DNA of 64,000 nucleotides from Mytilus californianus. Lineage: Eukaryota. The notes under the pieces were generated by a model. It was not told where the DNA came from. It saw only the letters and a list, made by a program, of their open reading frames with translations, and did not search any database. Each line of letters begins with the position of its first letter. The stretch's first letter is position 1. The DNA lies in contig NW_026262668.1 of NCBI RefSeq assembly GCF_021869535.1, positions 108,438,001 to 108,502,000 of the forward strand. Direction: 5' to 3'. Positions 1-40,339 of the stretch are shown piece after piece. The position numbers and the translations under genes were made by a program.

Positions 1-718
1 ATAAAAACTAAGGGTGGTATCAGATGCTTTAGGTTTCGTATGCTATAATTGTGGTATTGGTCTGTAAAACTATGAAATAACAATAACAGAACACTTTAAG
101 ACAATACATCTTTGGAAACTGGGAGACGTGACAACAATAAAATGTGACGAAACCAACCTTTGTTTATCATGGCTTTTACCGAGCAGCTTTTTTAAACTAC
201 AGTAAGAAATGACTTAATTCGACAAAAACACTTGAATGACTAACTAATTGTAAAATGTAAACAGTGTAAACAGTAGTAGTTTGTTGAGATTAAGAATTGG
301 GAAATTTATGAATGGATAAATAATCACTGTATAGTTTTCAATTGTGGATGCAAAAGAGAGGCAAAAGATACCATGGAATATTTAAACTCATATATCGAAA
401 ACTAACTGACAATGACATGGCAAAAAACGAAAAATGACTAAAAGGAAAAACAACAGTACACAAAACACAACATAGAAAAACTAAAGACTGAGCACCACGA
501 ACCCCACCAAAAACCGGGATAGTCTCGATCTAATAGTTGATTAATAAATGTCGAGGTATGAATCCCTGTTTGTTATGTCAGCTGTATGTTTTGTTTTAGC
601 TTGATAAGCTTTTTTTTTTTGGTAAAAACTAATTTCAATCCAAATTATGTTATAACTTGACATAATTTTTGTCTGTTTGCAAACTGGCTAACTGTATGAT
701 GATTTCGTCATATTTCAG

Positions 719-881
719 GTTTGACATAACGTCCATAATACAAGATGTAAGAAATGAGCTGGTTTATACGTCAGATAGATATGAAATGCCGATATTATCA
801 TCGACACTGAACAAAACATTATTTCTTGGAGGTTCTCCAAAGATGAAACCTGATAATGATAAACAAGATGAAGGAAACTAA
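719..881 (+). CDS. Terminal exon (caspase p10 C-terminal half) of an upstream caspase-family paralog (gene 0)
   Basis: tttcag acceptor at 718, phase 2, reads FDITSIIQDVRNELVYTSDRYEMPILSSTLNKTLFLGG...*; aligns with gene 1 last exon KDIRSILEDVKKEIICSLDNYEIPQSVTTLRYPVFLG. Confidence 0.85.
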
Positions 882-3404
882 GTTTTTAAGACATAATTAT
901 ATGATAGACCTTTTATGGAATTGTATCTAGTTTACAAGTTCATATTTACTTTAAAAAATATCAGGTTTGAACCATGATTTTATATTCATGTATTGACTCC
1001 TGTAACCAATAAATATTATTATCAGCATAATCTTCGAAACTAGAAGATAAAAATGACATCGAAAAGGAATGAATTGAATTGAATTCTATGTCAGTGATTG
1101 TTAAATTTTTCCTTTTTTATTATTATTATTTCCATGACGAAGTTTATTTGAGAAATAAAGTTTGAAAAATGTATATGCAGAAGTGTGTTAATGTTAGAAT
1201 TTTATGTACTTACGTCCTCGGAACACCAGCATAGATACATGTTTGATCTAAAGTTTGTGGAGTATTAAAACGATCATTTTCCAATCTGCAAATGGGAATC
1301 AGTGTTAAAATTGTATTTTACATCGTCTCTCTGATAATTGTTTCGATTGTCATCAATATAAGGTTTACATATATATTTAGCCCATTGGTGGCATTCTGCT
1401 GTTTTCTGCTCTTTGCTCGGGTTGTTGTCTCTTTGACACATTCCCCATTTCCATTTTCAATTTTTGGTCTTGTTTTGTTGTTTGAAAGGTGGGAGTTATT
1501 AATATCACCACCGAACCAGGTCCGGTAATTTTAAGATAAAGAGCAGCAATGACAGCGCTGCTCCTAAAACAGAAATTTTTTCAATAAATACCATAATGAA
1601 ATCGCGAATATAAAGCGAAGCTAATTTTAATTCAGTCGACAAATCGCGAATATAGACGGAGCGACAATTTCCAGGTTAATATTACTTTGAAGTAAAGTTA
1701 TATACCATTATATTTTTGAACGTTGTCTCATGTATGTTCTCGCCATTTGCCTTTTTCCCATCACGTTTAATGTAAATGAACGTATAATTAGAAGATACCT
1801 CCAATGAAATAAATATATAAGGTAGCAACATCTACAGTTCACTCTTTTCTTGCCTGGTGTGGTCGCTCTGATACAATGTGATTAGAAAACTGTGCATAAA
1901 ATGTTTAGAATATTTCAAGTACTTACCCTCAATGTTTGATGCAATTTCAAGTAGGAGAAACAGAAGGTTGTTGCCCTAGTAACGTTTCAATCATATTCAT
2001 AATTTTGAGATCTCCAAGATGTACTCAGTATACAGTTTTACAAAATGGTAACATGTTCTATTTATCTGGAATAGAATTAAAAAAGAGGTTACTATTTCCT
2101 CTCCTTGTATCCTTCAAAAATCCCTTTTCTGACAATAAGGAAAACTTGTCAGCGAGAACTGAAACACGTTTGATATACACCGATAAAATAAGATACAATT
2201 GCAGGGCTTGTCGTTAGTATGATTTAATTGTAATGAAATCGATGGAAGATTGCATTACAATTAATGCCCTCTCATTAAGTACATATAAAAATTGTGCGAT
2301 ATAACGCAAACCAACGGCTATTTTCCCCTTATTGCAAGTTGAAAATTATATGCTTAATATAGGAACCGTTTATCCTGGGACGGATGTCATAAATGTTAAA
2401 ACTCGAGAGCGTGAGGGAGTGACATGAATCATTAAAAAGTCGCCATCTACAATTTTGAAGTAAGAAAAGGAGAAACTTCCAATTCCTATTACACAATTGA
2501 TATTGTGTCAATAATGACTGGTGTCTTAGTCTTATAGTTCAATATATCGAATCTTTATTCTCAATACCACCGTAATGTGTCTAGAAATTCATATATATCC
2601 CAATATCATTAATCAGCAAGAGGTTAAAATAAGAAACCCTTGTAATCTTAAATTCATATGTGCTTGTGCAAACGTAGACTTTTGAACTGAACCTTAATGA
2701 AAAACACGATTTTTTTTAGTTTTTCTGTCAGTTATTTTAACCTGGATGCAGACGCAAGTCATTCATAAAGTGTCATTTTCATCAAATAGCCAGTATGACA
2801 TATTGCTTTGCACTGCGGTTGTCATAGTCTATCTCCTCTCTCATATTATCCTTTTATCTTATCCGTTTCTGCACTCTTCCTGTGAGGTATTGTTAAATTT
2901 AAGTGTTCATTTGGCGGTATAATGCAATTACAATAGTCAATACTTGATAACGCATGATCAGTGTTAAACTTTACAACTGTCTGAAACTTTAAACTTCTGG
3001 CAAAACTTCATGACGGCAATGCTGCAGTATACAAGAATTGAAAACAACTCGTCATAAATGTCATGCCTCCTAAGCGATTTTCTGGATTTACCTTCATCAG
3101 AAAAGCTCAAAGCCGAATATTTGTATAAGATCTCCAGAAGAAAGAACTTAGAAAAAACTACAATGTATGAAAGTTCCATTTATGAGCGATATGCTTTTTA
3201 AAAAAGAATCTTCACTTCGTTTGAGTTAAATTAAACATATCTCCAAAGGCAAATTTGAATTCTGATTCTTCAAACTAAAGGTTGCCCCTGTCCAAAATTT
3301 ACAATTCCAAAATTTTATTTGTCCATTTAATTTACAAACAAATTTGAGTAAAACCCGACCTTTCTTAATTTATTAATGTTGTAAATTTGTTATATAACAA
3401 AGAG

Positions 3405-3670
3405 AAGCGAAAGATACAAAAGAGACATTCAAACTCATAAGTCGAAAATAAACTGACAACGCTATAGCTAAAAAAAGACAAACAACAGTACACATATCAC
3501 AACAAACTAAAGACTGAGCAACACGAACCCCACCAAAAACTAGGGGGATCTCAAGTGCTCCGGAAGGATAAGCAGATCCTGCTCCACATGTGGCACCCGT
3601 CATGTTGCTCATGTAAGTAATAACTCGTTGGTAAGTCTAACTCGGTAGGTCACTTTCAGGAAAAAGGGGA
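3405..3670. repeat. High-copy repeat, 3' end derived from the Penelope-like family (further copies near 355, 6005, 12700, 36870, 40790, 42330)
   Basis: aactgacaacgc.atggc...actaaagactgagcaacacgaaccccaccaaaaac...gtgctccggaagg.taagcagatcctgctcc recurs and generates several spurious Cys/Val-rich ORFs. Confidence 0.8.
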
Positions 3671-4321: not shown

Positions 4322-7300
4322 ATGGAAAACGAAAAAGCAACATCTAATGACCATAAAAAAGAGGACGATGACGAAAATCTAAGGAAGACTGAAACAAATA
4401 TATCAACAGAAACATTATTAACAGAGAAACGAAACTACAAAGAGGAAGAGGACCACCAGCATAAACTAAAGATTGAACCAACTACAAATACATTAGCAAG
4501 CATTCCAGACGGTGAAAGAACTAGGGCAATTGGGAATGTGATAATTAACGAAAGTACAAAACAAAGCAATGAAGCAACATCCACGAGAGACGAACTTATT
4601 CAGAAGATAGAACAACTTGAAATTCAGAAGAAAGCTCTAAGACAAAAACAACTTATAAAAGAAATACAATCATTACAATCAGAAGTACAAACAAACGTTC
4701 AAGAAGATTTGAAAACTGATTCATTTGGAAGAAATGACGTACCAAATGTTTCCAACAGTATGTACACCATTATGTATTGATACGAAACTATAACATATTT
4801 CAACAAATGTACAAATCTTTCTTGCAAAATATGGTAATAAATCTAAGTGATTCAAAGGATTATCTTAAAGTTATGATAGGGATATAGTAATTTGGTAATT
4901 GTTGTTTGGGGTTAGAGATCAACGGTCGGAATCCTTGGTGTTAAACGTACATTTAGTTATTTAACTCATTACAGAAAAGTGATTAAAATATTACATAAAT
5001 TGTTATAGATGCCGGATATTTTAAAAAGGTACCAGATTATGAGTGTAATCACAGTAATATTGTTAGCTTTATATTTTCATTTTATCCAAGGTGTAGCCCC
5101 TATGGCAACCGATATTTCAGCCCGGTCCAAATTTGATATGCAACTGCAAGAATTAAATGAGAAGATAGAACAGACAAGTAAATATGTGGAAGAAAGGAAA
5201 AAGGCGGAAGACTTGTCATCTCTTACTACAGAAGAATTGCATACTAAAGTCCAAGAGCTTAAACACAGGAAGGAGTTGTTATCCAAATTTCGACAAAAGG
5301 CGCAGGTAATATCTTTGATACAAGATTTACATACACAGGTGTCAGCAATGAAGGAAAATGTTAAAACTATAGAGGATAAAAGTAAGTACTTGTTATTTTT
5401 TTTCTTTCTATATCCTAAATCTGCTTAACGTAAATTTTTAATGCCAAATCTTTATGCAATCGCTACTTATGTTTCTACGGATTTCTACACCCTTGTTTTT
5501 GAAATGTTTGGGTTTAAGCGTTCCCGGAGAAGTTCAATCTAGAAAAGTGCTTCGGACACACGAAATTTGTAAAGTGTAATTTTTATTTTTCAACAACACT
5601 TAACGCAAGTTTCATACTGAACTGATATTTGATCTTGTGTATCAAATACCAGACTAAAAACCTTTTCAGCGATACATACATTGGTGTAAGGCAATATCTT
5701 GTATGCAATATATCAAGGAATATATGAAAATATACTATTTTCATACTACCAAATTTTGAGGTATATCATTTTTCGGCAGGTTACCTTCTGTGTGGAAAAC
5801 AGTAATTTTCCCCAAAATTTCACCGATTGTAAGCTTGATTTTGCTTCTTTCAGTTGTTTTTACTGGACCGAGTACTATATTGTCCCACCACAGAATTATT
5901 ATCCTGTCGGAAAATTGTATACTCCAGAGTCAAAAGTCGGTGATATGAAAATTGTTTATTAAACATCTTCATGGCCGGAATTGCTGAAATATCTTATTCA
6001 TTAAAACAAGGCTGAAGATACCAAAGGTACAATCAAATTCATAATTCGAATGAAACCGACGAAACTACGGCAAACAAAATCGATAGATACACAAACAAGT
6101 CTTCAAAGCACTGCATAGAAAACTAAAGAATGAGCAACACGAACTAGGATGAATTTTTAGTTGTAATCTCTGTCCTGCCTTTTTATTTTTCACACTATTC
6201 GGTCTTGCCTTTTTTTTATAAATTTATCCTGACTTTTTTTACATAAATTGTCATCCTGCCTTTTTTTTTTTGCAAAGTTGCTCATCCTGCCTTTTTTTTT
6301 TTTGCTCAAAGCTCCTGTCCTGCCTTTTTTCAAATTTCATCCTAGCCCCCTCCATAAAAATCAAATGGTAGCTCCCTTAATCAACTGCCATTTCTCTATT
6401 CAGTAATTTCCAGTGATCGTCTCAAGGCATATGCTTTGTCACCCTCTGAAATAGATGTTTACTGGGATCCAGCAGACTATACAGACTTGAAGGCTTATAC
6501 TCTATTCTACAGAAAACAAACAGATGATACAACCGTGTTCCATGCAGTACACCCAGATGTGTCTATGACGTCTTATGTAATAGAAGATCTTAAACCAGGT
6601 ACAATATACGATGTGAAATTAGAGGGCCTTGCAAATGAAGGATATCGAATAACTACTGAATCTTCCGAAACAACAACATCCAAACCGGGTATGTAGAAAA
6701 TCGTGTGTCTTAAATAAATTAAAGTTACAAAACAAAAAGCAGGTTTCATCCCACTTCATTAAAAATGACATTTGCAGTAAAGAATTGTTTTGTGAACTAT
6801 ATTATTAACAATAGAAAATATTAATTTTAGAAACAATTTTGTTTAATTTTTTTATGAATCTTACTTATGTTCTTATTTAATTACAAAATACTTTGATCGT
6901 TTCAATCTCACAAGAAACAAAGTGTAGCACCATAACATTTTGTAGCTAATTTATTCAATTCACTATCATCGGGGAACGTGAAAAACAACGGCCTGATTTA
7001 TGTACAAAACAACAAACGATAAACAAATTTGATATACAGCAACAAACGACAACCACTTAATTTCAGGTTCCTGATAGTTATCAAAGGTACCAGGATTATA
7101 ATTTAATACGCCCGACGCGCGTTTCGTCTACATAAGACTCATCAGTGACGCTCAGATCAAAATAGTTATAAAGCTAAACAAATACAAAGTTGAAGAGCAT
7201 TGAGGAACCAAATTCCAAAAAAGTTGTGCCAAATACGGCTAAGGTAATCTATTCCTGGGATAAGAAAATCCTTAGTTTTTCGAAAAATCGACTTGGAACA

Positions 7301-10300
7301 AGAACATACAGAATGTGGCGAGGTTTAAAGTTGTTTGCTTTAAAATTGAACGTAAATACACGTATTATTTTTCTAAATTAAAAATGTCGACCTGGAATTT
7401 GCGAAAATGAATATTATAAGTAATGATCAGCATCAATGCAAAAAGGGTCTATCAACGTTTAAATTTTTTTTCCAAACAAGTATATACTGATAACATGGAA
7501 TTATTTGCTTTGTAGTAAATGGATTTGCGTTAATCATAGCAAACCATTCGGATTTCCGATTGTCTCATCTTACGAATCTAGATGGTATTCAAACAGATAT
7601 ATGTAAGTAAATTGATATAATTCCAAAAAGAAATATGTATGTTAATTATTAGAATTTTGCAGTATTATCAATTTTTTTTATTTTTCTACGATCAACCCTA
7701 CCATCCCCAACGCCCAATTAAACTATCGACTACATCTTCTCCTTAAGCAATGCTTTTCCTACAAAAAAATGAATCGCAGATACAATTCCTTGTTTTAGGT
7801 CATAAAAAATCTTACTTTGTGAAGAAACATACTGATTCCAAAAACAAATACACTGAAATGACATAATCAATATGCTAGACATTTTGATCGATAACATATT
7901 TGTTGAGTTTGATGGTTTGATATTTCAACAAACAGTCTGTAATAGGTTCTAATTTTGCAACTCTACTGACCGACTTGTTTTGTATTGATATGAAGCAGAA
8001 TTCATACAAAACCTTCTACAAGACAAGAAGAAAAAGCATCTTGCAAAGTTCTATAATTTCTCTTTCAAATATATTGAAGACATCCTGTCACTTAATAACC
8101 CCATTTCAGTAAGTGCATGCACCTCCTATTTCCTGGAATTAAGGATACTAACGAACCTAGAAGGTCTACTACTTGTCTTGATCTTTTCCTTGATATTAAC
8201 ACAGATAAACGACTTTAAACTAGAATGTTTGAGACACGTTTTAATTTCAACGTTCCAAATGTAAACTTCCGATTTCTCAGCAGTAACACACCATCTGCCC
8301 CATCGTTCATACTTAATCCCTTTTGTAAAACTCAATTCAAAGATTATCATCCTCGTCCTGAATATACATGTACATGAAACATTTATCACTAAACGTTAAA
8401 AAATTAACACACAAACGATATGCAATTTGTAATTGGCTTTCCCCGAATTCGGATTTATATTGTAGTTCTATGTTATCTTAGTTTAATTTCTTTTAAGTGA
8501 GCTTTAAAGAGCAATTAGAAGATTTCGGGTTTGAAGTTTTGATCGAAGAAAATATAACTGGACTTGAAATAATCCAGGCAGTGGAAAAATATTCATCCCG
8601 TCTAGAGCAACAGCACATAGACTGCTTTTTATGTGTTGTCACTGGGTACATGTATAATGGTTATATTTATGGAATAGATGGAACACCAGTTTTATTGAAT
8701 AAAGTGTTTGAACCACTACGAGTTGCCGATAAAAAGGAACTAGACAAATGTGAGATTGGAGAAGGCAAAGTTAAACTTTTATTTGTCGATGCATTTAAAG
8801 TACGCGAGCATGTCATCGAAGAATTGGATGGTAAGATTGTGAAATTTATATCGTACTAATTTTTATGTAACGTGATGTCTAAAAATTATAGTTGATAAGG
8901 AGTAAATCACTGTTAAATAACATCTAAAATAGTTACTTGCAATATTGTCTTGGAAAATCTACCCCATAACTGCTATTCCCAACAACGTATACAGTGTTTA
9001 CGTATTTAAAGGGGGTTGCCCCATTACTTTGCCGAAACAAAATTGAAGAGAAATAATTTAATAAATCGGACTTCTACCTTCTATTGTAATGCCGTAAATG
9101 GAACTAATATATTAGAAATGATAAACTCGGGAACATTCTTCCAGTCGAAATATGCTAACTGATTTAGTAGACATGGTTTTTTTCGGACGATGGTGTGACG
9201 ATTTAAGATACTAATTTACCTGTCACAAGTTCTGTCAATTTCAATTTAATGTCATGACGAGACTTTAGAGAAACCTGTTTTTAGTGTTGTTTGATTTTTG
9301 GCGGAGTTAGACGAAGTCCATCACCGTCTTTTAGTAATATGATGTCGGGCGGATGGTCGGGCAGGCATCCAGACTTGGGAACTTAGTTTTTTTTCAGCAA
9401 AAGTGACGAAAGAGGGTACACGTTTTGTGTAATCAACTCCTCCTATACAGTGTTCAATCCAGATAACAGACTTCACAGGACGATTGTATATATGTTGAAG
9501 TTGTGTAAATGCTCAGCCTCTTGTGAAATTGTGATTTTATTTACTTTGAAACTTTTTTCAAAAGATTTTAAAAAAGAGGAAACAAATTTTTAGCTCCTAT
9601 AGTTTCAAACCCAAATCCCTGAAACTTCACAAGAAGATTGCACAAAAGTTTAAATTGTGCAACTAGTATTATAGAGTAAGTTGAAAGAAGATTTTTTCAT
9701 ATTTCTTCTTCCCCTTCATGTAATTGTAAACATTCTACATTGATTAGTCATACATTTTGCAACCTGGCCATTTGAGACTTTGTCTAATTTTTGTTTGATT
9801 ACGCAGCTGTATTCAAGCAGTAGCCGTGAATCTTACTTTTATCATTCAATTCTGTGATTTTTTTCAGACTCGTTACAACCAAGAGCAGTTCAATTTCGAT
9901 CGACGTCAAAGACAGTTTTAGAAGCTTCTTGGAAAAGGCCAAAACTTACCAAAAGGAAATTAAAGGACTTTAAATTATTGCTACACAATACATTTACATC
10001 ACAAATAAAACATGTACCTTTTAATCAACAAAAAGATAGTTATTTCTGCAAATTCGATAAACTAAATTCTAATACAGAATATAACTTAGAAATTTCTGCT
10101 GATTTTGAAGACGGCTGTTCTGGAAAGCCAGTGAAAGCCACATTGACAACGTTTCAACCACGTAAGTTAAATGCATTGTCTATAGGTCAAACTATGAATA
10201 GAAGCGGTAGAGAAACTTTTAATAGTATAACTGAGTAATATTACCGACTTACATTTTCATTGTGATAAAAAAGTGTGTTTGTCGCACTTCATAAATACAG

Positions 10301-13300
10301 GATAAAATCACAATATAAAGTAAGGAGATGTGGTACGATTACCAATGTGAAAACTATCTATAATGACGTGGATAAGAGCAAATAAAAATCCCGTAAGGTC
10401 TTTAAAAATGGGCAATATCATTGTATCAGTGTTTAGAATTTAGAAAAAGTTTTTTAAGAAATTTATGGTAAATAAATCCCTGACTTGATATTTACCAGTT
10501 ATACATAGATTGTGTTCATTGAAATATAAAACATCATAACAGACACGAACATAGCAATCGAGGATGAATGCACACGATAAATAAAGGGTCAAAGAAATAT
10601 CTAGTACAAAAAAGGAAAATTACCAATAGGGAACGAAATATCCTCCCTATTGCCTAAATATTTGTTTTGATTTTACTGTTTGAAACTGAAATATCCTAAT
10701 CTAGCAAAAGGATAAGTCTTGCTGTTGATATCAGATTTATTTAAATAAAATTCTCTTGTGTAGATTTCCACAGACTTATTAGGGAATTCTTGATTATTTA
10801 AATCAAGATTTTCATCAAGGTAGCGATAAGTATATTAATTATCAATTAAATGGAATTTACACAAATTTTACTGAGTTAGGTAATAAATGCGATTCATAAC
10901 AATACAGTTTGTCAAGTATGTCAAGGTAAGGTTGGGGCCTCGGTGGCCGAGTGGTCTAAGTAGTTACTACTGTAATCACTAGCCAGTCAACACTGAGGTT
11001 ATGAGTTCAAACCCCGCTCGTGCGGGTGCACTCGACTCAAATCTTAATTGACTAGGATTGTCAGTTTTCCTATCGAAGGTCGGTGGTTTTCTCCGGGCAC
11101 TCCGGCTTCCTCCACCAATAAAAACTGGCCGCCACGAAATAGCCCAAAAGCGGTGCTTAAAAGTGGCGTTAAAACACCAAAAATCAAAATCAAATCAAGG
11201 TAAGGTTGAACGATCTGTATAAGTCTTCACTCCTTTTTTTCAGAATTTATGCAGCCTAGAAAACTTTCAGTAGAAGCAGTATCGTCTTCTCAAATCTATG
11301 TCTACTGGATACCACCAAAACCCGAGTCCCGGGCAGTAATGGGTTATAAAGTGTCAATCAGGGATCAAACACACGAAGAGTATAGTCAAAAGATTACAAC
11401 TTATACATGTATTGTGTTTAACGATCTAAAGGAAGGCACAGAGTATAATATATCTGTGACAACGATTGTAAAGGGGAAAGTAATTGACATTGAAACTGAA
11501 GTCAGAGACGAAGAAAGTATGCCAGTATATATTGATATAACTACACTTGCAGATCGTAAGTTGTGAAAATGAATAAGAATTATAATATCAACGAAAAAAC
11601 GATAGAGTCATGCTGATTTTACATCATTATGTAAAAATTGTCTCAAGTATTCTATAACCAAAGGAAACAGAATGTTTATAATTGTATTTATGATTATTAA
11701 TTTATTGCGGATAAAATGCTAGTGCAAGAAATGTGTCAATAGTCATCATACACCATCAAAATAGTGTCATATAATCCTAGTAAATACAAATTTAATGTAA
11801 CAAATGTGCATGTTGGCAGTTGATGTCTTTTCAGTAATTGTTAAAATATCTTGGAACATTAAATGATGAAAGTCCCGAACAACACACACACACACAAACA
11901 ACCTTTGGATAGTATATGTATAGTATGGGATTTTCATATTTGCATGTATCTCACTATTTATAATCTTTAACAATATTTACTTTTAGGAACACCTTCAATG
12001 ATGTCAGGTAAGCAATTACACTTCACACGTTTTCAGTTTTATAAATATATATGAATAGCTTAAACTTTTCCCTATGGTTTTGTTTCTACCTTGATTTGTT
12101 ATTTACATGGATTTAAGAGATTTGAACATTGGTAATCTACTATTGCCTCTAATTTATATGCCGATGAATATTAGTGTAAAGTGTAATAATTTCGCGGATT
12201 GGATATTAAATGAAAACGGTCAAAACTTTTCTGTGTAAAAAAAAGTATTTTATGGTGTTTTGTTTTGCATATATAAGGTATGCCACGTGCTTTGTATATA
12301 TAAAGTATGTTACGATTGTTTGTTATTTATTACAGGATCAACAGTTCAGTATATATTAGAAGAGCCAGACTTTTTCATTGCATCTGCAACTGCAACTACT
12401 GTATACAAGTCTTCAACGTCATCGTTTCTTAATACTTTGAAGAGACATCTAGCGGAAAAGTACGAAAAGTATGTTTGCTTCTTTTAACTAATAAGGAGAA
12501 GTTATTCCAAGTTAAAAATCTGGGATCGGAAAGATAAGAAAAAAGAAAAAATATAATATTAAGAAAGTTTACAAAAGTATAAATTATATTTCCCATTCAG
12601 AACAGGGGATATTTCGTACTTTAAAATAAATGACCACCAAAAGATAAATCAAATGTCTTGACACTTTTTCCAATCGTCCATTCAAACTTTAATGTTGTGA
12701 ACACGTATTTGTTGCTTAGTCTTTAGTTTTCTATGTTGTGTCATCTGTACTATTATTTGAATGTTTGTCTTTTTATTTTTGGCCATGGCGTTGTCAGTTT
12801 GTTTTCGATCTACGAGTTTGACTGTCCATCTGGTATCTTTCGTCCCTCTTTTAAACAGTTTACAACATATATACACGAAATGTCTCAATGAAACACTTTG
12901 ATATCTCTTATTTTTAAATTGTTTTAGCTTACCAATGGTTTTGTCTCAGTAAAACTTATTACAGAAACAATGTTTATTACGCCCTTTTAGTCTACACGAG
13001 ACACTCAAATGGCACTCGAATTAAAACAGTTGGAAGGCCAATTGAATTAAAGTTGAACAGAATCTTAAAATTAAAAACAAAATTAAAAAAAAAAGATGTG
13101 TAAGATCTAGCTCAGGCTATCTTAGCCTTAGGATTGAAAAAGTGTTTCGACAAATTTTAATATTTCATGAGCTGTAATTGTACAGAAAATAACCGTATTA
13201 ATGATATATTAAGCCGGCACAGAATTCATGGCTGCAGGACTGGCGAAACGCTCACCAGCAGTGGCATCGACCGAATGTTTGTAAAAACTCTTCAGAGACC

Positions 13301-13479
13301 AGGCTTATAATTATTCTGCATTTGTTTTTAAGACTTTTGTTTTGCCTTTTTGTTGTAGGAAAGATATACGAAGTATATTAGAAGATGTCAAGAAGGAAAT
13401 AATATGTTCATTGGACAATTATGAAATTCCACAATCTGTAACGACATTGCGTTATCCCGTATTTCTAGGAAAGGTCTAA
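4322..13479 (+). CDS. Gene 1: FN3-containing pseudo-caspase (coiled-coil - FN3 - p20 - FN3 - FN3 - p10), ~770 aa
   Basis: Exons 4322-4757, 5091-5381, 6404-6688, 7516-7602, 8498-8830, 9868-10161, 11244-11555, 11987-12007, 12336-12468, 13359-13479; all GT-AG, phases consistent, no stops, 2313 nt. Caspase motifs NGFALIIAN, CFLCVVTGY..IYGIDG, KLLFVDAFK, EPDFFIA; FN3 W/Y/L..TEY motifs. Confidence 0.88.
6404..6688 (+). CDS. Gene 1 N-terminal FN3 exon (phase 1-1)
   Basis: SPSEIDVYWDP...YTLFYR...SYVIEDLKPGTIYDVKLEG is a fibronectin type III signature. Confidence 0.9.
7108..7151 (-). ncRNA. Minimal type-I hammerhead ribozyme motif inside an interspersed repeat (~7074-7329)
   Basis: Minus strand reads GCGUCA CUGAUGA GUCU-UAUGU-AGAC GAAA CGCGCG UC GGGCGU: full catalytic core, 4-bp stem II, palindromic stem III (ACGCGCGU), GUC cleavage triplet, stem I with one mismatch. 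Confidence 0.75.
7516..8830 (+). CDS. Gene 1 caspase p20 exons (7516-7602, 8498-8830), catalytic His and Cys replaced
   Basis: GFALIIANHSDFRLSHLTNLDGIQTD; QLEDFGFEV...DCFLCVVTGYMYNGYIYGIDG...KVKLLFVDAFKV. His position is Tyr (8647-8649); Cys position is Phe (8794-8796). Confidence 0.88.
7715..8345 (+). mobile_element. Degenerate Penelope-like reverse transcriptase fragment in a gene 1 intron
   Basis: Frameshifted frames give DIINMLDILIDNIFVEFDGLIFQQT...LLTDLFLY*YEAEFIQ...FKYIEDILSLNNP (YIDD-type RT motif) and FNF..VNF.FLSSN.PSAP. Confidence 0.8.
9290..9800. mobile_element. Degenerate HINE/Helentron-associated-like non-autonomous element
   Basis: T-rich end, GC-rich cggg/gtcgg tract and core pieces (tcaactcctcc...gaaacttcac) resembling the elements at 22093 and 57105. 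Confidence 0.4.
9868..11555 (+). CDS. Gene 1 linker FN3 exons (9868-10161, 11244-11555)
   Basis: LQPRAV...LEASWKRP...KLNSNTEYNLEISA and MQPRKLSVEAVSSSQIYVYWIPP...GYKV...DLKEGTEYNISV; both phase 1-1, between the p20 and p10 exons. Confidence 0.9.
10934..11194 (+). mobile_element. Full-length tRNA-derived SINE with 13-14 bp target-site duplication
   Basis: A-box TGGCCGAGTGG, B-box GAGTTCAAACC, V-domain-like core GGTTTTCTCCGGGCACTCCGGCTTCCTCCACC, (AAATC)n tail; TCAAGGTAAGGTT(G) at both 10921 and 11195. Confidence 0.88.
12336..13479 (+). CDS. Gene 1 caspase p10 exons (12336-12468, 13359-13479)
   Basis: YILEEPDFFIASAT...SSFLNTLKRHL / KDIRSILEDVKKEI...EIPQSVTTLRYPVFL*; phase-2 intron as in the other paralogs. 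Confidence 0.85.
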
Positions 13480-13787
13480 AGTTTATAACGATAAAATGGT
13501 TAAAATGGAATATATATATAAAGTAAACGCTATCTTTATATCATGAAGACTTAATATACGGGAATCATGTAGTGACAGTTCATTTATGTATACATAAACG
13601 CTTGTCATATTAAAGAAAATAAAAAAGGTAACCTTGTTTGACTCTTCTTATTTGTTCTCAACAAATGTTAATGATTGTAGCAAAAACCAACAACAAATCC
13701 CAAACAATATCGCACCAGAACTTATCTTAATGATATTGAATAATAGAAACATTCAAAATTTACGTTATAATAAAATTATAATGCTCG

Positions 13788-15039: not shown

Positions 15040-15698
15040 TCAGGAATTGAAATAGATAGGTCCTGTCAGTGTAGAGTATAACAAAGCCACCTGTCTGACT
15101 GTGGTGTTATCATCTGTGTTAACCATGGTATTAGCTTCTTGAAGAACAGTTGTTATATCCCTCCTTACAAGCCTGTAATAACAATTGAGACTTAAAACAT
15201 CTCACAGAGCTTGTAATTTACAATATTTTTTTCTTAAACTGATTTTTAGAAAAGTTAGCAAAAGGAACTTCACTATCATTTCTATAATATGATTACAGGA
15301 TCTAACATCCCTAAAAGTATATACAACTATAGATATACAACTTATATAAAAAATATGCTCTTCCTGCCAATAACAAATGGTTTGGTAGACATTGATCAAA
15401 ATATGTTGCTAGCCATAGAAAGTTAACACCATCTAAAATCTTACATCAGCTGGATATAATTTGACAACATCACCTCAAAAATATATAACATACCAGATAT
15501 TTCATACAGTTGTTGTAATTTTAAAATATTTAGTTCAATAGAGTTCTAGAAGAACATACCTTGGATTGTCTTCAAAGTGATGTTTGATTGCCGATAAATA
15601 CTTGGATCCTTTTTCTTGATCCAAGTAACTCCCAAACCGTGGTATCGTAGATATGCCAATTAAGAAATCTGGTTCTTTCGGAATATATGTGGATCCAG
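15040..15698 (-). CDS. Gene 2 caspase p10 exons (15698-15560, 15172-15040)
   Basis: YIPKEPDFLIGISTIPRFGSYLDQEKGSKYLSAI / DITTVLQEANTMV...QVALLYSTLTGPIYFNS*. Confidence 0.88.
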
Positions 15699-18600
15699 CT
15701 GTAAAAAAAGAAGGATTTTTGTTAGTTTTGCATCATTGAGTTAGAGAAATTTGATTGTGTGCTCAAACATTAAACAAAAAAAGAGACAAAACATACGATT
15801 GAGAGAATGAAACTCGAAGAGAGACCGACAAAATCATGAGTTCTATATCGTGCTTATAAGTGCTTATAATTTCCAAAATATAACAAAAAGGACATGAAAT
15901 TTTCTTGCAAAACTATTCTACTAACATGTCACGATTTAAACATGGAAAAGGCACTATTATATGACAAAACAAAAAAAAAACCCAAAAAAATGAAATACTT
16001 TTAAAATAGAATATGCAAAAGTAGCCCTTTTTAAACGCTTTAAAAATGAAGTAATCGTGCTTTTTTTACGACATAAAAAATACAGTTTATTATGTTGTCA
16101 AATTGAGTTCTTGTATGTAAATTCTGAAATGTTATAAACGCAAGTGAAGGCGTTTGTAAAAAAAGTATTTGCTCGATGTTTTAGAAATAAAGATAATAAA
16201 GATAAATGAAGCTAGTATAAACTTACGTGTAGACGTTCGGATTGTTGTTCTTGCAGGCTCTTTCACTTCTATTGGTATATCAAACTTCCCTTTCTTTGTA
16301 ACAACATTAACTTGTATTGTATATTCTGTATTTACATTCAAGTCCCGTAAAATACACGAAGCGTATTCAGTGTCAATCTCTTTATAGTGTCTTGCACTTT
16401 CACCCCATCGAACTTTGTATTTTGTTAATAAATGTTTGTGTTTTCCGTCTGGTGGTTTCCATCTCACGCACACTTGTGTTGGTGATATCACAAAACAATC
16501 GATTTGCTTTGGTTGCATGTTCTCTGAAATTTGCAAAATTGTATGTAATTCATAACATCTAGTTTTGTCTACTATCGTTTGAGGAAAAGAGGACAGGTTT
16601 GTGATTACGACAAATAAAACATAAACATAGTCATCAGTGACACATATATTCCATAACGATCAACCAAACATGTTGGCGTACGTAAAACTTTCGATGACAT
16701 GACTTCAACTTTACCATCTGGAACCTTTGATGAAATAGTAAGCAGTAATACTCTTTCAAAGAAATTGTATAGCCCTGCGACTCTTTTCACAAAAAATCTT
16801 ACGATTAAAATTTAACGTAAGTTATACTGAAATGTTCATGACTTACGACTTTTTTTACTCGTAAGATTTTTTTGTGAATAGAGCCCCTGGACTATCTTAT
16901 CAACTTGGATATATATATATACAACATATGCAGGCGCTGCTTACAGAAAAGGAAAGTTCACAACGGCAAAGAAATTGATCGATCAAAACCCGAGTTTGAA
17001 TAATTTAGAGACAAACCTGTTTTTGTTGTTTTGTTATGTTAGGGGTTTAGAGGGAGTTATATTAATGTTTGTTATGTTATGTAAGGGGTTTAGAGGGAGT
17101 TAGATTAATGTTTGTTTTGTTATGTTAGGGGTTTTAATAGAGGGAGCTAGATAAATAACTTTGTGTTAATCCTCGTAATAAGTAGCTGAAAAATATTCCT
17201 GAGAAAGTTTATATATTACTGCCACTGAAAGGTAAACCACAGCCAAATGGATGAAATTAGGATTCTATAATTAGTATAGAGTAAACAAAAAGGATTCTAC
17301 AACCTTATAGCGAAAAACTGTTATTGTATAGATGTCAACAAGATATAGATATATTTTACATGATAAATGATCTTTGATATACAAAATATCTTTAAAATGT
17401 ATACTTCTTTTCATTTCAAAAGAGTACAAAATAATAAATTAACAGTTTACTACTAAAATAAACTCTACATTTAAAATAAGATTTACCGTGCAACCTTCGA
17501 CCAACAGGATGTTTCAGATAGAAGTAAAGTTTAGCAAAATCAATACTGTCGTTTATAGAATAAGAATTTGACTAAACACATATGCTCATGTAATACATAA
17601 TGAACACTGAAAAGAACATTCAAATACATATTAAAACTTTTGATACAAATGCATTGTTTAATGACTCTCTCACTATGAAGCTAGCATTATTCTGTCATAT
17701 ACAGCATCGGTTTTGTAATAACTTTTTATATATACGGTCTTTGATTTTGTAGGCTGTACCATGGAGTGCAGTTGTTGGGCAAGGGTTCAATAATTTGACC
17801 ATGAGTCTAAGAGCTGTATGATATAGTATTTCGAGACATGTCGTATTGCATTTTGCATAACATACCTTTCTTTTTCGTGTGAGCAAACAATTCCACTTCA
17901 TCTCGCTGTCCATTCTTTAAGACAGCTACTACTTTTAATTTGTATTCAGTGTCTGGCAGCAAGTGATGAAGTTGTGTAAAATAGTTCAGTGTATCTGGCG
18001 ACGGACTGACTGTTATCCGTGATCCACGAAAAAATATGATATAATTTTTGATATTTTCAAAGTATTTAGGTCCAATCCATGACACATCAATGCTATATGG
18101 ATTCATTGAAACAGCATTAATATGCCTTGGCTGAAATGAATCTAAAAAAAATATATGTGCCATCAATAAAAGGAATTTTTTGTTTATGATAACTATTAAA
18201 AAAAACTAATACATAATTTAGACTAAATAAGTATGGTCCCAACACTGTCCAAGGTTCGGGGAGGGTTGGGCTCGCGCAAACATGTTTTACCCCGTCACAT
18301 TCTATATATGCCTGTCGCAAGTCAGGAGCCTGTAATTCATTGGATGTCGTTTGTTGGTATATATCATATTTGGTTTTTATTTATTGTTTTGTACATAAAT
18401 CAGACCATTAGTTTTCTCGTTTGAATTGTTTTACATTTTGCTATGCTTGCTTTGCGGTATGGATTTTTTCCCTCATTATTGAAGGTCGTACGGTGACCTA
18501 CAGTTGACTACTTCTACGTCATTTGAACTATGGTGGAGGGTTGGCTCATTCATACCACATCTTCTTACTTTAATATGGCGGTTCTTTCGTTTCTAATTTC

Positions 18601-21600
18601 ATTAGATTTGCACAACGTTGGGTTATGGAAAACCGGATTTATTCAATATTTGGTTATTAGTTCTGTGTCCAATGCAGTTCTTTTTCGGTTGTTTTTTTGT
18701 TTAGTTTTGTTTATTTGCAACTTACGTTATTAAGTGAATTTTACATGTTGCAAGATTTTCATTTAGACTTCTTATGTGAAATACATTTAAACCCCATTAT
18801 TTGACCGGGTCATTCAAATATAGTCTTTAGCGAACTTCTGCCATCAGGCAGTGTGGTTCCAATGTAGATCGTCCATTTGTAGTCCAGAATGTATGAATTC
18901 GCATCAACGACCGATCGGAACGAGAACGTTAAAACAAGTTGTTCGTGCAGGAAGAGGGTCTAAACAGTTAAACGGTTCGAGACCGCTAGAATTCTGACAT
19001 CAGAAATCATTTGCATAGTAATTTCCTAAATACATACCCTGAGAAACTGACCAATCGACACAATAAACTACAAAGCATTATGGGTTACTACGAGTTTACT
19101 ATCACTTAAAATACGTCAAAAAGTGTATTTTTTTAATTATATCTCGGAATCTCATCTTAATATCTTGTTCATCTAATGTTATAATTTTAATGTATATAAC
19201 GCAATCTAATATTTGCATGCCAGTCAGCTTTAAAAAAAAACATTGTTCACGAGTTTCAGCATTCGACGTTTTTTTTTCGTCTTGTCAAAGTAGTTAAAAA
19301 CAGGTTTTGTGTGTTGGTATGCACTGTATCTGTGCATTCATTTGACATGGAATTAATAACGAAGTGTCCAATGTTCAGTCCTTCGAACTCTTTAAAACTA
19401 GGTAAAACAATTTAAAGGATTGAGTTACGTGAATTGTATGCTCTAGGAATTTTCGTTTAAAATATTGCTATGTCTTTCTAAAAATAATACTCTTTCAAAA
19501 AGCATGGAGGATACGGCTCAAAAATCATACATGATATCAACCATTACATGCTGCAAAGTACAATGGTTTTAAAGGCAAACACTAAACTGATCTTCTCTGG
19601 TTTCGTTGACTTTTTGTCTTGACATGATATTAAAATTGGTCTCATACAGTATTTACAATATTATTTTATAAATATAGACTGAGACACCTGTCTATTGTTG
19701 AAGACTTTATGTTGTCCTGTAAAACTAGGAGTGGAAAAACAGAAATAGTGAATGAATGAAAGAAATTATATTCTCATAAACTAATTTACACAATTTCAAA
19801 GACAATAAGTTTTTACAATAGAACAGTGATAGTGCAATGTGCAGTGCATGTGGTAACACTACGACACATTTTGTCATAATATCTGAGGGCGTGCAGTCTT
19901 TAGCTATAGTTTTTATGGACAATTACCCTGTACTGAATTTTATTGACTTTTGCAATTACAGAAGTAGGTTAATCCTAGTATCTATGATGAGTTTAATAAC
20001 AAAATCCAGAAAAAAAAATTGTCCGCATTTAACGGATATTTTACAATCGCATTCCCTATTTTACGAGATAACTTAAAATTACAGGTCCCTCTTGTTTTCG
20101 AAATCTGAAAGCCAGTACAACTACTCATCTTCTGTAGTTTTTGTGTCGTTTGGTTGCTGTCTTCAAGAATGACTTTGTGTAATTATCCATAATATTAGTG
20201 GCTACTCTTTGACCCAGGTAAACAAAATAAGTGTTAAAAAAAATACATTGGCGGGAACATTAGTATCCTAAATCATGCCTACCCGTATAGATAGTGTACC
20301 TGACCTGTTAAAGAAACCTTGCGTCAACTCTCAGGCTGTTACTATCTTATTGATTATTTCTCTAATAATCGAAGATATTTTGACCCAAATGTTGCATGTT
20401 TTCAAATCAGGCTAATCCATGACTGGTTGTGAATTATTACTTGCCATTTACAACAAGAGTCACTCACAAAGCACGATATGAACACTGGAACACTGGTTTT
20501 TGTTTTTCATAAATATGTTGTTCTATCTTGATTTATTTTTAGCTCTACAGTAGTTTATGAAACAAATGCATATTAAGTTTTTGCATTTCAGCTCAAACCA
20601 CAAGTACTGAAGTTAGTTCTTAATTGCGTAAATTCGTTAAGATCACAAGAAGCAATTTGGACTAAAAAAAACAATAAATGAGGTATTGACATATCAAAGT
20701 AAGTAATTAGTAACAATTTTATGTTGCTTAAATATCCCTTGCAGATGTTGGATATTTATGGAATTATATACCTTTTTCAAATGTAGAGCACTCAATTTCT
20801 TGAGATGGTGCACCTTTGACCTCTTTCCATTTTCCCGAAAGTGATCGAAACTTCCAAAGTGGAACAACAATTATTCTATATGCTGTATTGTCCTGTAGGT
20901 CTCTAAGTATCAGAGAATTATGCTCTGTGATTTCTTCGAACCGTTCTCCTCCTCCGGATACTCTATAGTAAACAATATATCTTACTTCATCTCCCTCACC
21001 AACTTTGTGCTGAGACCAAGATAATTTAATAGAATGTGGAGCTAAAGGTGTTGCATGGATTTCAACTAAAAATAAAAATACAAATCAAATTAATCCAGAA
21101 AATCATTAGTGTTTTGGTCATGATTTTTAACCCTTATAGTTGTAAGAGGAAACACGTTTTAGATATAAGAAGATGTGGTATGAGTGCCAATGAGACAACT
21201 CTCCATCCAAGTCAAAATTTATAAAAGTAAACCATTATTTTACATGCATTCAAACTGTGTTAGAAATATAGGTTACTTACAATGTTCTTCCACTCCTTGA
21301 CAAGCATCTATTAAGACAATTTTAGGTTTATCTTGTAAACCTCTACTTTCACTAAGAGGTCGTAGCAAATCCTCTATTGTTACACTTCGTTTTCCATCAG
21401 AGCCATACAACACTCCCAGATTTCCTGAACAAGCAAACACACAGACAAATATATCATGGTAGGACTCTTGTTCGGCATAGTGTTGAACTGCTGATTTCAT
21501 TTTTGCTGCCTCTAAGTTCAGGTGAGTAGCAACTTTGAAATTTAGGTGATCCTTGAAAAGACTTTTCATGTAATCTAAAATAAATTTATATAAAATGTGA

Positions 21601-24600
21601 CAGTAAAGTTCTATATAAATATATAAAGCTGTGCTAAGCCAAATTTAAAAAAAATTATATTTACGCTAGCATTACCTGATTTTCACATTCATGAATCAAA
21701 TCAAGTCGACTAGTTTTGCTCGAATTTGACGAATAAAAAAATAAACATGGTTATATATAATTTCAGAGAATGTTCATCGTGTACTACTTTGTATATCACA
21801 GTCATGTTCACTATGGGGAAGCATTTTTCAACATTAATATCTGTTTCAGTCTCTGAATCTAATAGAAAATATTAGTCAAACATTATGATAAAATAAAACG
21901 AGTGTTCACATGACTGGACACAAGGCAACAGACGAAGCAATGTCACTTTTGTTTGTAAATAAAAAAAAATACGAATTGCTTGTACGGTATTATGATATGC
22001 GGTATGTGTTTTACTACTTGTTGGAAGGCAGAACGGTGACATATTATGGATAACATCCCCAAAATACACGTACTAAAGATGAAAACATGAACAACAAGAA
22101 TGTGCCCATAGTACACGGATGCCCCACTCGCAGTATCATTTTCTATGTTCAGTGGACCGTGAAATTGGTGTCAAAACTCTAATTTGGCACTAAAATTAGA
22201 AATATCATATCATTGGGTCCATGTGTACTAAGTTTCAAGTTGATTGGACTTCAACTTCATCAAAAACTACCTTGACCAAAAACGTTAACCTGAAGCGGGA
22301 CAGACGGACGGACGGACGGACGGACGAACGAACGAACGAACGAACGGACGGACGCACAGACCAGAAAACATAATGCCCCTACTACTATCGTAGGTGGGGC
22401 ATAAAAACAATCATTTTATTTTATGTTCATTGCTATTTCAACCAAAGATGAAGAACAAGATCTTCGTTAACTCTGCTCAACTCCATACGCACTTTACCCG
22501 CATTACGTTAAAACAACGTTGAAGGTAAATCCAGAAAAGCGCTTTAGACGCATGCAATTTATAAAGTGTTGTTTTAATTTTTAGTATTTAATTGATACTG
22601 ACGTGATTTATAACAAACCTTTCTTAAATTGTCCGTTTATAAATTAACAAATTATTAAGCAACTAAGGTGTCAACTCCCTTAGACAAAGTTGACCTTAGG
22701 TAGATTTGGCTATCATACTAAGGTCTTTTTTCATATAGCTCTTCAACTGTTTCGGTTCTTACATATCCTTGGCTTTCAATATACGGCTTTGAGCGTTCCT
22801 GATGAAGTATATCAAGAAAAGCGCTTCGAACGCAGGAAAGTTATCAATTGTTGTTTTTATTTTTTAAAGCACCGGGTCGAAACCTCTGCTGGAGGACTGT
22901 CCGTCCCCGAAAGTATCATCAGCTCAGTAGTCAGTACTTCGGTACTGACATAATTTATAACAAACCTTTCTAAACTTGTCCGTTTATAAATCAACCATGT
23001 ATTAAGAAACTAAGGTTTCAACTCCATCAGGCAAAGTTGACCTAAGATGGATTTGCCTATTATATCTACGTCCTTTTTGGTCATATAGCTCTTCAACTGT
23101 ACGTTTCTTTCGTCTTTCAAATATTAGGCTTTGAGTGTTCTTGGTGTAGTTAAATCCAGAAAAGCTACTCGGACTCATGAAATGTATATAGTGTTGTTTT
23201 CTTTTTTATCTAGTTTTATTTCAATTGTTGTTTCATTGGCATACACCGCATATCTCCATTTTCATTTTATAAACACCATAAAAAGAGATCTAAGTTAGTC
23301 TGTGCTGATATTTGTTTAGATACCACATATCGAGGTCCAGTCAAATAAAAAAAAATACATTTTACAGGTCTTACAAAAAACTAACCAGAACATACCTGCA
23401 TCTTCTTCACCTGCCGGGTTATTAAGGTTTACTATGATTAAAGCGAAACCTGCAAATAAAACACTTTGAATATAAAAGACAGGTCTTTACAAAACTTTGA
23501 ATTCTTCGAAATACTAAGGATTCTCTACCCCAGGAACAGATTACCCTAACTGTATTTGGCAAAATCTTTCGGAATGTTGGCTCCTCAATGCTCTTCAACT
23601 TAGTACTTTATTTGGCCTTTCGAACTTTTTTTTATTTGAGCGTCACTAATGAGTCTATTGTAGACGAAACACGCGACTGGCGAACAAATTTTTAAGCCTG
23701 GTATCTAGGATGAGTTTATTGCTGACGGTAGCCAATTGACCTTTCTAAACAATAAATTTGTTATTACGGATATTATTTTAGATTACATGAAAGGTTACAA
23801 TGAACTCTCTTCGTCATTTAACAGGATAACAGATTCTCTATGTTTTGGGATACTTGTTAAAATTTCCAAATCCGTTATAACGAATAAAACAACTAGTTAT
23901 AAGCACAGCACACACTTATTTTAACAATAAAAGTTGTAATAACGAATTACGAAATTTGTAAAATCGAATAAATTATTTTTAAATAGGTCTTTGATGTGCT
24001 TTGTACCTATATGTTATCCTCAATTAATTCAGATCGATGTTAGTCATTTTAGATACAAAATTTGAAGTTGAATTTTGATTGGGTATAAAATCGACAGGAT
24101 AGATGAATGAAGAATGAAAATAACACTTTATCAATTTCGTACATCCAAAGCACTTTTCTGGATTTACCTTCATCAGGAACGCTCAACACAAACATTTTAA
24201 AGAAGAAACTTTCATTTATTAAACCCGTTATATCAAAATATGTATTTGAAAAAAAGGCAGCACATATTTATTACTCTACAAATAAATGTTTATGTTGAAC
24301 ATGTGATTTTGTTTGTGAACTTACAATACCTCGTAGGAGCTTTATATAATTTATATTCATGTACAGTTAGGTCAATATCCCTAATGCGCCTCAAATTGAG
24401 GAACTATATATATAAAAACAAATTTAAAAAAAATCTGTATGTAATGATATTGTGTCAACGTATATTTGTTCTGCATAACAGAAGTTCCCCTGGTAACTTT
24501 GTTATTAACAAAGACATAATATATGTTCCTGTTGGAACAAATATTCCATATCCTTTATTCTAGTGTAAATAATATTACAGAATTTACAGAATACTTCGTC

Positions 24601-40200: not shown

Positions 40201-40339
40201 TTTTAGGTATGATCTTGTTACTATTTTGGAAGATGTTAACCGTGAACTCACTGCTAAGAAAGCTAAGTACAGAGCTGGCGATGTTAATGCTGTATCAACT
40301 TTTGTGTCATGTCTACGAGGACCAATATTTTTCCAATAA
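34299..40339 (+). CDS. Gene 3: caspase with intact His/Cys dyad and unrecognised prodomain, ~377 aa
   Basis: Exons 34299-34404, 35861-36154, 36364-36462, 39085-39381, 39672 (or 39678)-39876, 40207-40339. Motifs YKMDAKPRGYALIISN, KRPGADTD, LSSHG (His 39231), KPKLCFFQACPV (Cys 39360), DFLVGYSSLPGSVSYR, LRGPIFF*. Confidence 0.9.
34433..35080 (-). mobile_element. hAT-family transposon remnant (terminal region plus transposase fragment) in the first coding intron of gene 3
   Basis: ORF 34667-35041: DLLPLSTVESQKF...PKFQILSRKHL...LTAVIWSNR resembles the hAT region after the BED finger; terminus CAGGCATGGGGCGAATTACATTG followed by attac-rich subterminal repeats. Confidence 0.75.
35490..35830 (-). 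mobile_element. Penelope-like element C-terminal fragment
   Basis: Reverse strand of gataggaaacgaaagctctggaatatcgtat encodes an RYSRA..S..DFLDRG..LT.KLL-type segment; same family as 16590-16975. Confidence 0.75.
38440..38886. repeat. Minisatellite, ~20-21 bp unit TTGACATTTCTCAGTTCCAAG
   Basis: About 20 degenerate tandem copies, in the intron between the two p20 exons of gene 3. Confidence 0.9.

Follow-up and report, generated by a model that had tools for sequence, protein, structure and literature searches.

Can a caspase carry whole folded domains in the loop that separates the two halves of its fold and, if so, what becomes of the enzyme? Caspase folds rank with the most thoroughly studied of all protease folds, and the intersubunit linker, which separates p20 from p10, is regarded in them as a short loop with a regulatory role. 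The question is raised by a gene of the mussel Mytilus californianus (hereafter gene 1), which lies at positions 4322-13479, on the + strand, of the window analysed here, a 64,000-nucleotide (nt) stretch of contig NW_026262668.1 that is AT-rich (about 32% GC). A first-pass annotation had read in this gene a caspase with the order FN3 - p20 - FN3 - FN3 - p10, in which some 200 residues of FN3 fold occupy the linker and might turn the activation loop into a ligand-binding or scaffolding surface. This architecture is borne out here by the reading frame, the domain matches, the assembled RNA contigs and the conservation in related mussels. The product is, as judged from its sequence, a pseudo-caspase, in which the caspase-type sequence is kept, the catalytic residues are lost and the gene is under selection.

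The open stretches of the + strand between 4322 and 13479 encode two helical heptad-rich segments, an FN3 domain, a p20 piece, two FN3-like domains and two p10-like pieces. In order to join them, we enumerated the GT and AG dinucleotides within 8 nt of each candidate boundary and dropped the combinations with internal stops. Essentially one exon model survives, with ten exons, GT-AG introns and 770 residues (Table 1), and its start, its end and its junctions 8830/9868 and 12007/12336 agree with those of the first-pass annotation. All the introns are in phase 1, except the last one (phase 2), and exon 2, the three FN3 exons and a 21-nt micro-exon are, therefore, symmetric 1-1 modules. The product (88 kDa) has the order coiled coil - FN3 - p20 - FN3 - FN3 - seven-residue micro-exon - p10, its FN3 domains being termed FN3a, FN3b and FN3c below, and it is acidic overall, with FN3b as the sole basic domain (isoelectric point 9.6). 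Neither a signal peptide nor a membrane segment is predicted in the 770-residue protein, which, on its predicted features, is soluble and intracellular.

The identity of the individual domains was assessed by profile searches. Exon 5 matches the Pfam family Peptidase_C14 (PF00656) at 2e-9 (37.8 bits, for a cut-off of 21.4) and the caspases of the PDB down to 2.5e-7, and the p10 half of gene 1 can be aligned with seven canonical caspases. Exons 3 (FN3a) and 7 (FN3c) match Pfam fn3 (PF00041) at 4e-7 (30.6 bits, for a cut-off of 25) and 4e-11, respectively. Exon 6 (FN3b) has no Pfam match when searched alone, and a five-sequence profile of this exon, built from orthologues and paralogues, matches the FN3 domains of titin (5e-21), PTPRD (2e-12) and fibronectin (3.5e-9), as well as those of receptor tyrosine phosphatases, neogenin and others (range 5e-21 to 1e-6). 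Based on the Pfam matches and on those of the exon 6 profile, the order FN3 - p20 - FN3 - FN3 - p10 is correct. The insert comprises residues 478-686 (about 209 residues) and is located after the active-site strand and ahead of the first strand of p10, where the alignment gives 25-35 residues for the seven canonical caspases; the FN3 pair is thus confirmed at the position of the intersubunit linker.

Assembled transcripts join the domains from p20 to the stop codon. Four RNA runs were compared with positions 7500-13499 of the window, three of them (X1, X5 and X6) as assembled contigs and one (X21) as raw reads, and, of the words sampled from 8400-13500, about a quarter are present in RNA-type runs of two organisms, which is roughly the exon fraction. 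An X1 contig (967 nt, one mismatch) runs through 8500-8829, 9867-10161 and 11244-11555 and then into the micro-exon, whereas an X5 contig (976 nt) runs through 9867-10161, 11244-11555, 18 nt of the micro-exon, 12333-12468 and 13359-13499. X6 contigs, from the second organism, contain the joins from 8829 to 9867 and from 11556 through the micro-exon to 12333 and, additionally, a thin X1 contig joins 7602 to 8500. The contigs of these three runs differ from the window in 0-1 letters, and every stretch that they skip has GT..AG ends. Jointly, and in two organisms, they link p20, FN3b, FN3c, the micro-exon, p10 and the stop codon, with p20-FN3-FN3 and FN3-FN3-p10-stop each spanned by single contigs. 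The possibility that the FN3 exons belong to another gene was consequently rejected, since the contigs join them to both p20 and p10. A direct join of 8830 to 12336, skipping exons 6-8, would keep the frame; no joint bypassing the FN3 exons was found among the assembled contigs of X1, X5 and X6, although assemblies drop rare forms and minor skipping isoforms may, therefore, exist. For exons 1-4 the RNA comparison is absent or thin, and the model rests there on conservation and on a 770-residue gene call in Mytilus trossulus.

The catalytic apparatus of a caspase is lost in this protein. When HMMER aligns it with an ancestral effector caspase of solved structure, VVTGYMYNG stands against LLSHGEEG and FVDAFK against FIQACR, and the MAFFT alignment with seven caspases likewise places Tyr417 at the catalytic histidine and Phe466 at the catalytic cysteine. 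The S1 pocket is changed as well in the MAFFT alignment: the p20 arginine is replaced by Leu, the glutamine before the cysteine by Asp and the p10 arginine by Lys. The Tyr and Phe at the dyad positions are kept in both the L002 and the L001 orthologue (two further species). With the histidine, the cysteine and all three residues that bind the substrate aspartate exchanged, activity as an aspartate-specific cysteine protease is impossible for this protein. This removes one part of the first-pass proposal, that of a modified activation loop, since with the catalytic dyad and the S1 pocket lost there is no proteolysis to activate. A protease that remains active through unconventional catalysis, its activation regulated by the FN3-filled linker, would be in keeping with the retained fold and with purifying selection; we consider it extremely improbable and reject it, because all five positions are now occupied by Tyr, Phe, Leu, Asp and Lys, unable to serve as nucleophile or general base. 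Additionally, the paralogue located immediately upstream has a different residue (Ala) at the cysteine position, which argues against a new conserved catalytic residue.

In order to place gene 1 among its relatives, an exhaustive HMMER search with exon 5 was made against 1.84 billion cluster representatives. Only five close relatives were returned (fragments at 61% identity or less, and a paralogue), the other matches being ordinary caspases at E 1e-7 or weaker, and a profile search from the gene 1 exons likewise found only the paralogue family and fragments. The paralogue, P0004, is the RefSeq 'uncharacterized protein LOC143064736 isoform X3' of Mytilus galloprovincialis, and it matches PF00656 over residues 28-340 (9e-13). 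P0004 does not contain the first linker FN3, so that an in-frame skipping isoform, at least a predicted one, exists in the paralogue. The longer paralogues P0032 (M. trossulus, LOC134704994) and P0033 (Mytilus coruscus, unnamed product) align end-to-end with gene 1 at about 36% identity, have an identical order, micro-exon included, and a dead dyad (SYK and DTAK, that is, His to Tyr and Cys to Ala). Compared with P0032, P0033 is without 33 residues inside FN3b; the 614-residue model in the supplement of PMC10967218 has the full FN3 there, and the gap is probably a gene-model error. As for orthologues, the called 770-residue gene of M. trossulus, with Peptidase_C14 and fn3 matches, lies 3.2 kb downstream of the P0032 locus; the order of this locus follows that of the window, at 75-88% identity in nucleotides, and the amino-acid identity reaches 97% in exon 2 and 96% in exon 6 (FN3b). 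A more distant syntenic contig, L001, carries gene 1 exons 1-7 in order. Within the reach of the searches made, the FN3-linker family seems confined to mytilid mussels.

Selection was estimated by the Nei-Gojobori method between gene 1 and its M. trossulus orthologue, with synonymous divergence (dS) of 0.29-0.46 for the five estimated exons. The ratio of nonsynonymous to synonymous divergence (dN/dS) is 0.28 for exon 1, 0.03 for exon 2, 0.22 for FN3a, 0.12 for the p20 core (exon 5) and 0.06 for FN3b, and about 0.17 overall, for species separated by a dS of about 0.3; exon 4 (28 codons) has four changes in all, too few for a ratio. In the comparison with L001 the synonymous sites are saturated, hence dN alone was compared, and it rises from FN3c (0.118) through the coiled coil (0.161), FN3b (0.187) and the p20 core (0.272) to exon 1 (0.395). 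The two patterns therefore indicate that the gene is maintained by purifying selection and that the inserted FN3 domains are among its best-kept parts, evolving more slowly than p20. The scaffolding or ligand-binding surface proposed in the first pass fits this constraint, albeit indirectly. The same numbers bear on the view that gene 1 is a decaying duplicate or a transcribed pseudogene, or else an annotation artefact that borrows its FN3 exons from another transcript. The many degenerate copies in bivalve tandem caspase arrays (PMC10967218, PMC7836458) and the low expression of gene 1 speak for this view; nevertheless, we give it next to no credence and regard it as largely refuted by the single-contig joins, by a 770-residue frame that is intact in two species at a dS of about 0.3, and by the low dN/dS, both overall and in FN3b. 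Moreover, the architecture is common to the paralogue kept in three named Mytilus species.

Do the two halves of the fold still pack around such an insert? The structural work was done on the paralogues P0004 and P0032 in place of the gene 1 protein. The AlphaFold model of P0004 (the one-FN3 isoform, with an 18-row alignment) has a predicted local distance difference test (pLDDT) of 67 and a predicted template-modelling score of 0.62, with pLDDT of 75-90 in the caspase halves and 55-67 in FN3. Its element order (b for strands, a for helices) is b1 a1 b2 a2 b3 a3 b4 - seven-stranded FN3 insert - b5 a4 a5 b6, and both halves together form the six-stranded, five-helix caspase arrangement in this paralogue model. 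A Foldseek search of the PDB with it returned caspases only (single chains of caspase-8, procaspase-6 and -7, caspase-3, caspase-9 and CED-3), with target-normalised template-modelling scores of 0.65-0.85 and alignments over 330-355 of the 365 residues of P0004; the caspase-8:cFLIP complex 3h11 is among the matches. The fold search of the Atlas with P0004 aligned 215-226 residues at 3.0-3.6 Å, and both this search and that of the AlphaFold DB clusters returned ordinary caspases only; other linker insertions may exist elsewhere. The model of the two-FN3 form (P0032:155-618) has the same element order, at a pLDDT of 57 (below 40 in FN3b), and seven strands are predicted for each linker FN3, with low confidence for FN3b. 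By this prediction, the two halves of the caspase fold still come together and the FN3 module projects from between strands b4 and b5; the question put in the first pass, whether p20 and p10 pack with FN3 looping out, is thereby answered for the one-FN3 paralogue form P0004 only.

The origin of the insert may be read from the neighbouring genes, since gene 1 is part of a tandem array, in which the upstream paralogue is located immediately before it. Gene 2, on the minus strand at about 15100-27207, has the order FN3 - p20 - three FN3 - p10 and is, on its predicted exons, a half-dead relative with three inserted FN3 domains. Genes 3 and 4 (39045-40336 and 58466-58888, both on the + strand) are canonical-looking caspases, with SHG, with QACP and QACN, respectively, and with short linkers. 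In gene 3, the p20 exon ends ten residues past the cysteine, at a phase-1 donor between 39381 and 39382, and all the candidate acceptors upstream of its p10 coding sequence are in phase 1. This intron has the same position and phase as the FN3-bearing intron of gene 1, and its presence in a canonical gene fits an insertion by exon shuffling. Additionally, each of FN3a, FN3b and FN3c has its best match in the domain that holds the corresponding position in the paralogue, and FN3c is closest to the last linker FN3 of gene 2 as well; this position-matched similarity points, therefore, to one insertion before the genes were duplicated. The simplest history would be that FN3 exons entered once into a phase-1 intron of an effector-type caspase and that tandem duplication followed, the ancestor being of the caspase-3/6/7 type.

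The array also contains apparently active caspases, and conserved aspartates flank the FN3 pair of gene 1 (IEELD before and TLAD after, the latter TL[AT]D across relatives). Taken together, these features raise the idea of a decoy substrate or cleavage-controlled module, in which active caspases of the cluster would cut at one or both of these aspartates, freeing an FN3-FN3 fragment or unlocking the pseudo-caspase. Gene 1, its orthologues, the paralogue and the fragments found in other samples all have the motif E-[EQ]-L-D, without variation, immediately ahead of the insert, and FN3c closes with an aspartate in gene 1, L001 and the paralogue. However, the first aspartate is followed by another Asp, a poor P1' residue for known caspases, gene 2 has VEEH where gene 1 has EELD, and ELD may be no more than a conserved motif of structural origin, found past the active-site loop of effector caspases. 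We therefore think such a module improbable; were it real, the ancestral cleave-the-linker switch would survive in a dead enzyme and control the exposure or release of a binding module, as a new kind of caspase-operated signalling scaffold.

The reading that we favour, and hold to be probable, is that of a non-catalytic scaffold or adaptor, acting by binding and not by cutting. In it, the N-terminal coiled coils would oligomerise the protein, the caspase-like core would serve as a structural (rigid) or dimerising hub, and partners would bind mainly to the FN3 pair, which is under strong constraint. By analogy with cFLIP and caspase-8, one partner might be one of the active caspases in this tandem cluster, held by way of the interface through which caspases dimerise; we put this forward with considerable reserve, the active-looking caspases of the cluster being physically close to gene 1. 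Several observations weigh against the scaffold interpretation. The argument for such a role is drawn from the lost catalytic residues and from where the constraint falls, and the expression of gene 1 looks low (word depth 10-29, with zero reads over its exons in the raw-read run X21). In L001 we did not find the gene 1 exons that encode p10, and p10 is perhaps dispensable there or the assembly at fault. Finally, the structural evidence comes from a paralogue of about 36% identity and not from gene 1, and the model of the two-FN3 form is too poor to place the FN3 pair on the core.

A scaffold of this kind need not have anything to do with cell death. It could, for instance, be a cytoskeletal or ciliary adaptor of gill cells, with the coiled coil and the FN3 parts as the working elements and the caspase fold as a mere rigid spacer. 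Many cytoskeletal proteins inside the cell have a coiled coil with FN3 after it, and in gene 1 constraint is strongest in the coiled coil (exon 2) and in the FN3 domains. In M. coruscus, the paralogue is expressed almost only in juveniles (7.6 FPKM, fragments per kilobase per million) and gill (4.5 FPKM), with values close to zero in larvae, in haemocytes and in the majority of tissues (PMC10967218, Table S4). These expression data, however, belong to a paralogue in another species, the p20-like half is clearly constrained, and gene 1 is placed inside a caspase cluster; we consider this variant rather unlikely.

Comparison with known systems helps to define what is particular to gene 1. The upstream paralogues (LOC134704994, LOC143064736 X3, P0033 and the M. 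coruscus gene LG02.t1168) are the nearest, with the same order, a dead dyad and a place in the same array, but they are only about 36% identical, have Ala for Cys and include the predicted isoform without the first linker FN3. cFLIP-L (CFLAR) is, like gene 1, a caspase fold without the catalytic Cys and His; it keeps the p20/p10 packing and works by binding and not by cutting. It has tandem DED prodomains and a short linker, whereas gene 1 has coiled coils, FN3 and a folded linker of 209 residues, and the two have no sequence kinship beyond the caspase family. MALT1 and the paracaspases combine caspase-like and immunoglobulin-like beta-sandwich domains in an intracellular scaffold, and a MALT1-like cluster is among the nearest Atlas neighbours (a lead only). 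In MALT1, nevertheless, the immunoglobulin domains flank the protease domain, none being inserted, and the protein is proteolytically active, with specificity for Arg and with its dyad intact. The type II metacaspases of plants and protists (C14 family) have a regulatory linker of about 100-150 residues between p20 and p10; they resemble gene 1 in this long linker, which is not of FN3 fold, but they are active enzymes of another subfamily and kingdom. Bacterial proteins that combine Peptidase_C14 with fn3, GH85_C or SaeA-type Fn3 (Bacillota and Fidelibacterota; Atlas 0.79-0.85, leads only) have the domain combination of gene 1; they are unrelated in sequence, the likeness being one of domain content.

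In the literature, we found no description of FN3 as an insertion in the caspase linker, and to this extent the novelty suggested in the first pass stands. It is reduced by the fact that the M. coruscus orthologue of the paralogue has already been listed as an FN3-containing caspase. The bivalve caspase survey of 2021 (PMC7836458) does not mention FN3, whereas the M. coruscus work of 2024 (PMC10967218), the sole one we found with FN3 in a caspase, states that 'two caspases contained FN3 or PB1 domain in their prodomains'. Its supplementary InterProScan results give LG02.t1168 (614 residues) FN3 at 318-398 and 415-504, and its Table S1 scores this gene as caspase-3/6/7 with 'p20' only. LG02.t1168 corresponds to the upstream paralogue, not to gene 1, and these FN3 positions are those of the linker FN3 domains of P0032; thus, the linker insertion and the p10 behind it went unrecognised. 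RefSeq labels the paralogous genes merely 'uncharacterized protein'.

What these results suggest is that the intersubunit loop of a caspase can hold about 200 residues of folded domains, with the halves apparently still packing. The entry of ready-made phase 1-1 exons into a pre-existing intron would make this a clean natural case of exon-shuffled domain insertion inside a catalytic domain. A conserved and expressed pseudo-caspase, with an architecture of its own, now joins the caspase expansions of bivalves, which are large and little understood, and some of the bivalve caspases scored as 'p20-only' or degenerate may be likewise split by inserted domains. The practical reach is modest, and the biological role possibly narrow.

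Table 1. Exons and key residues of gene 1, and exons of gene 2, in window coordinates.
Feature	Position	Strand	Basis
Gene 1 exon 1: start codon, acidic low-complexity N-terminus, first coiled-coil repeat; residues 1-145	4322..4757	+	open frame, GT donor
Gene 1 exon 2: second coiled-coil repeat; residues 146-242, phase 1-1	5091..5381	+	weak coiled-coil-type Pfam matches only
Gene 1 exon 3: FN3a, prodomain FN3; residues 243-337, phase 1-1	6404..6688	+	Pfam fn3
Gene 1 exon 4: start of p20-like half, first strand NGFALIIANHSDF; Leu at S1 arginine position	7516..7602	+	alignment with canonical caspases
Gene 1 exon 5: p20-like core; residues 367-477; conserved IEELD at end, then phase-1 donor	8498..8830	+	Pfam, PDB matches, RNA
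Tyr417 (codon TAC) at catalytic histidine position	8647..8649	+	HMMER and MAFFT alignments
Phe466 (codon TTT) at catalytic cysteine position; DAFKV replaces QACxG	8794..8796	+	HMMER and MAFFT alignments
Gene 1 exon 6: FN3b, first linker FN3; residues 478-575, phase 1-1	9868..10161	+	profile matches to PDB FN3, RNA joins
Gene 1 exon 7: FN3c, second linker FN3; residues 576-679, phase 1-1	11244..11555	+	Pfam fn3, RNA joins
Gene 1 exon 8: 21-nt micro-exon RTPSMMS, phase 1-1	11987..12007	+	AG/GT flanks, X1, X5 and X6 contigs
Gene 1 exon 9: start of p10-like half, EEPDFFIASATATTVYK; Lys at second S1 arginine position	12336..12468	+	alignment, RNA join
Gene 1 exon 10: end of p10-like half, last helix, dimer-interface strand TLRYPVFL, stop codon	13359..13479	+	alignment, X5 contig
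Gene 2 FN3	27207-26827	-	
Gene 2 p20 start	23486-23319	-	
Gene 2 p20 core: ACSG at histidine site; DACQG, cysteine kept	21644-21276	-	
Gene 2 three linker FN3	21084-20767, 18205-17810, 16659-16135	-	
Gene 2 p10	15732-15538	-	

Some further features of the locus were noted. The opening of exon 1, MENEKATSNDH, is identical in the M. trossulus orthologue. The coiled-coil segments of exons 1 and 2 (4580-4700 and 5230-5340) have a common motif of about 35 residues, EL..K[IV][EQ].L...K..L...Q.[IV]..IQ.L...V, which is repeated in the upstream paralogue too; within gene 1, it suggests an internal duplication of the phase 1-1 coiled-coil exon. In FN3b, a basic cluster, KRPKLTKRKLK (9930-9965, exon 6), is kept in both orthologues and absent from the paralogue, and looks like a nuclear-import signal or a patch for an acidic ligand.

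On contig L001, the p20 exon of gene 2 lies just 1 kb past exon 7 of gene 1 (L001:13103-14120), and this contig likewise yielded no exon for the linker FN3 domains or for p10 of gene 2; the gap would be either a deletion of about 8 kb between the convergent genes 1 and 2 or an assembly collapse. The last exon of the upstream paralogue, which has the same architecture, is located at window positions 699-878 (+), is 74% identical to the C-terminus of P0004, and the rest of that gene lies mostly before the start of the window. Finally, short interspersed repeats are present in the introns of gene 1 (10300-10700, 10930-11190 and 12710-12855), with a related stretch resembling an open reading frame at 3373-3612. 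Their summed depth is of hundreds to about 30,000 in all the RNA runs, with many mismatched copies and loose ends, and they probably derive from transposons, being abundant elements that many transcripts contain; they lie outside the coding sequence of gene 1.

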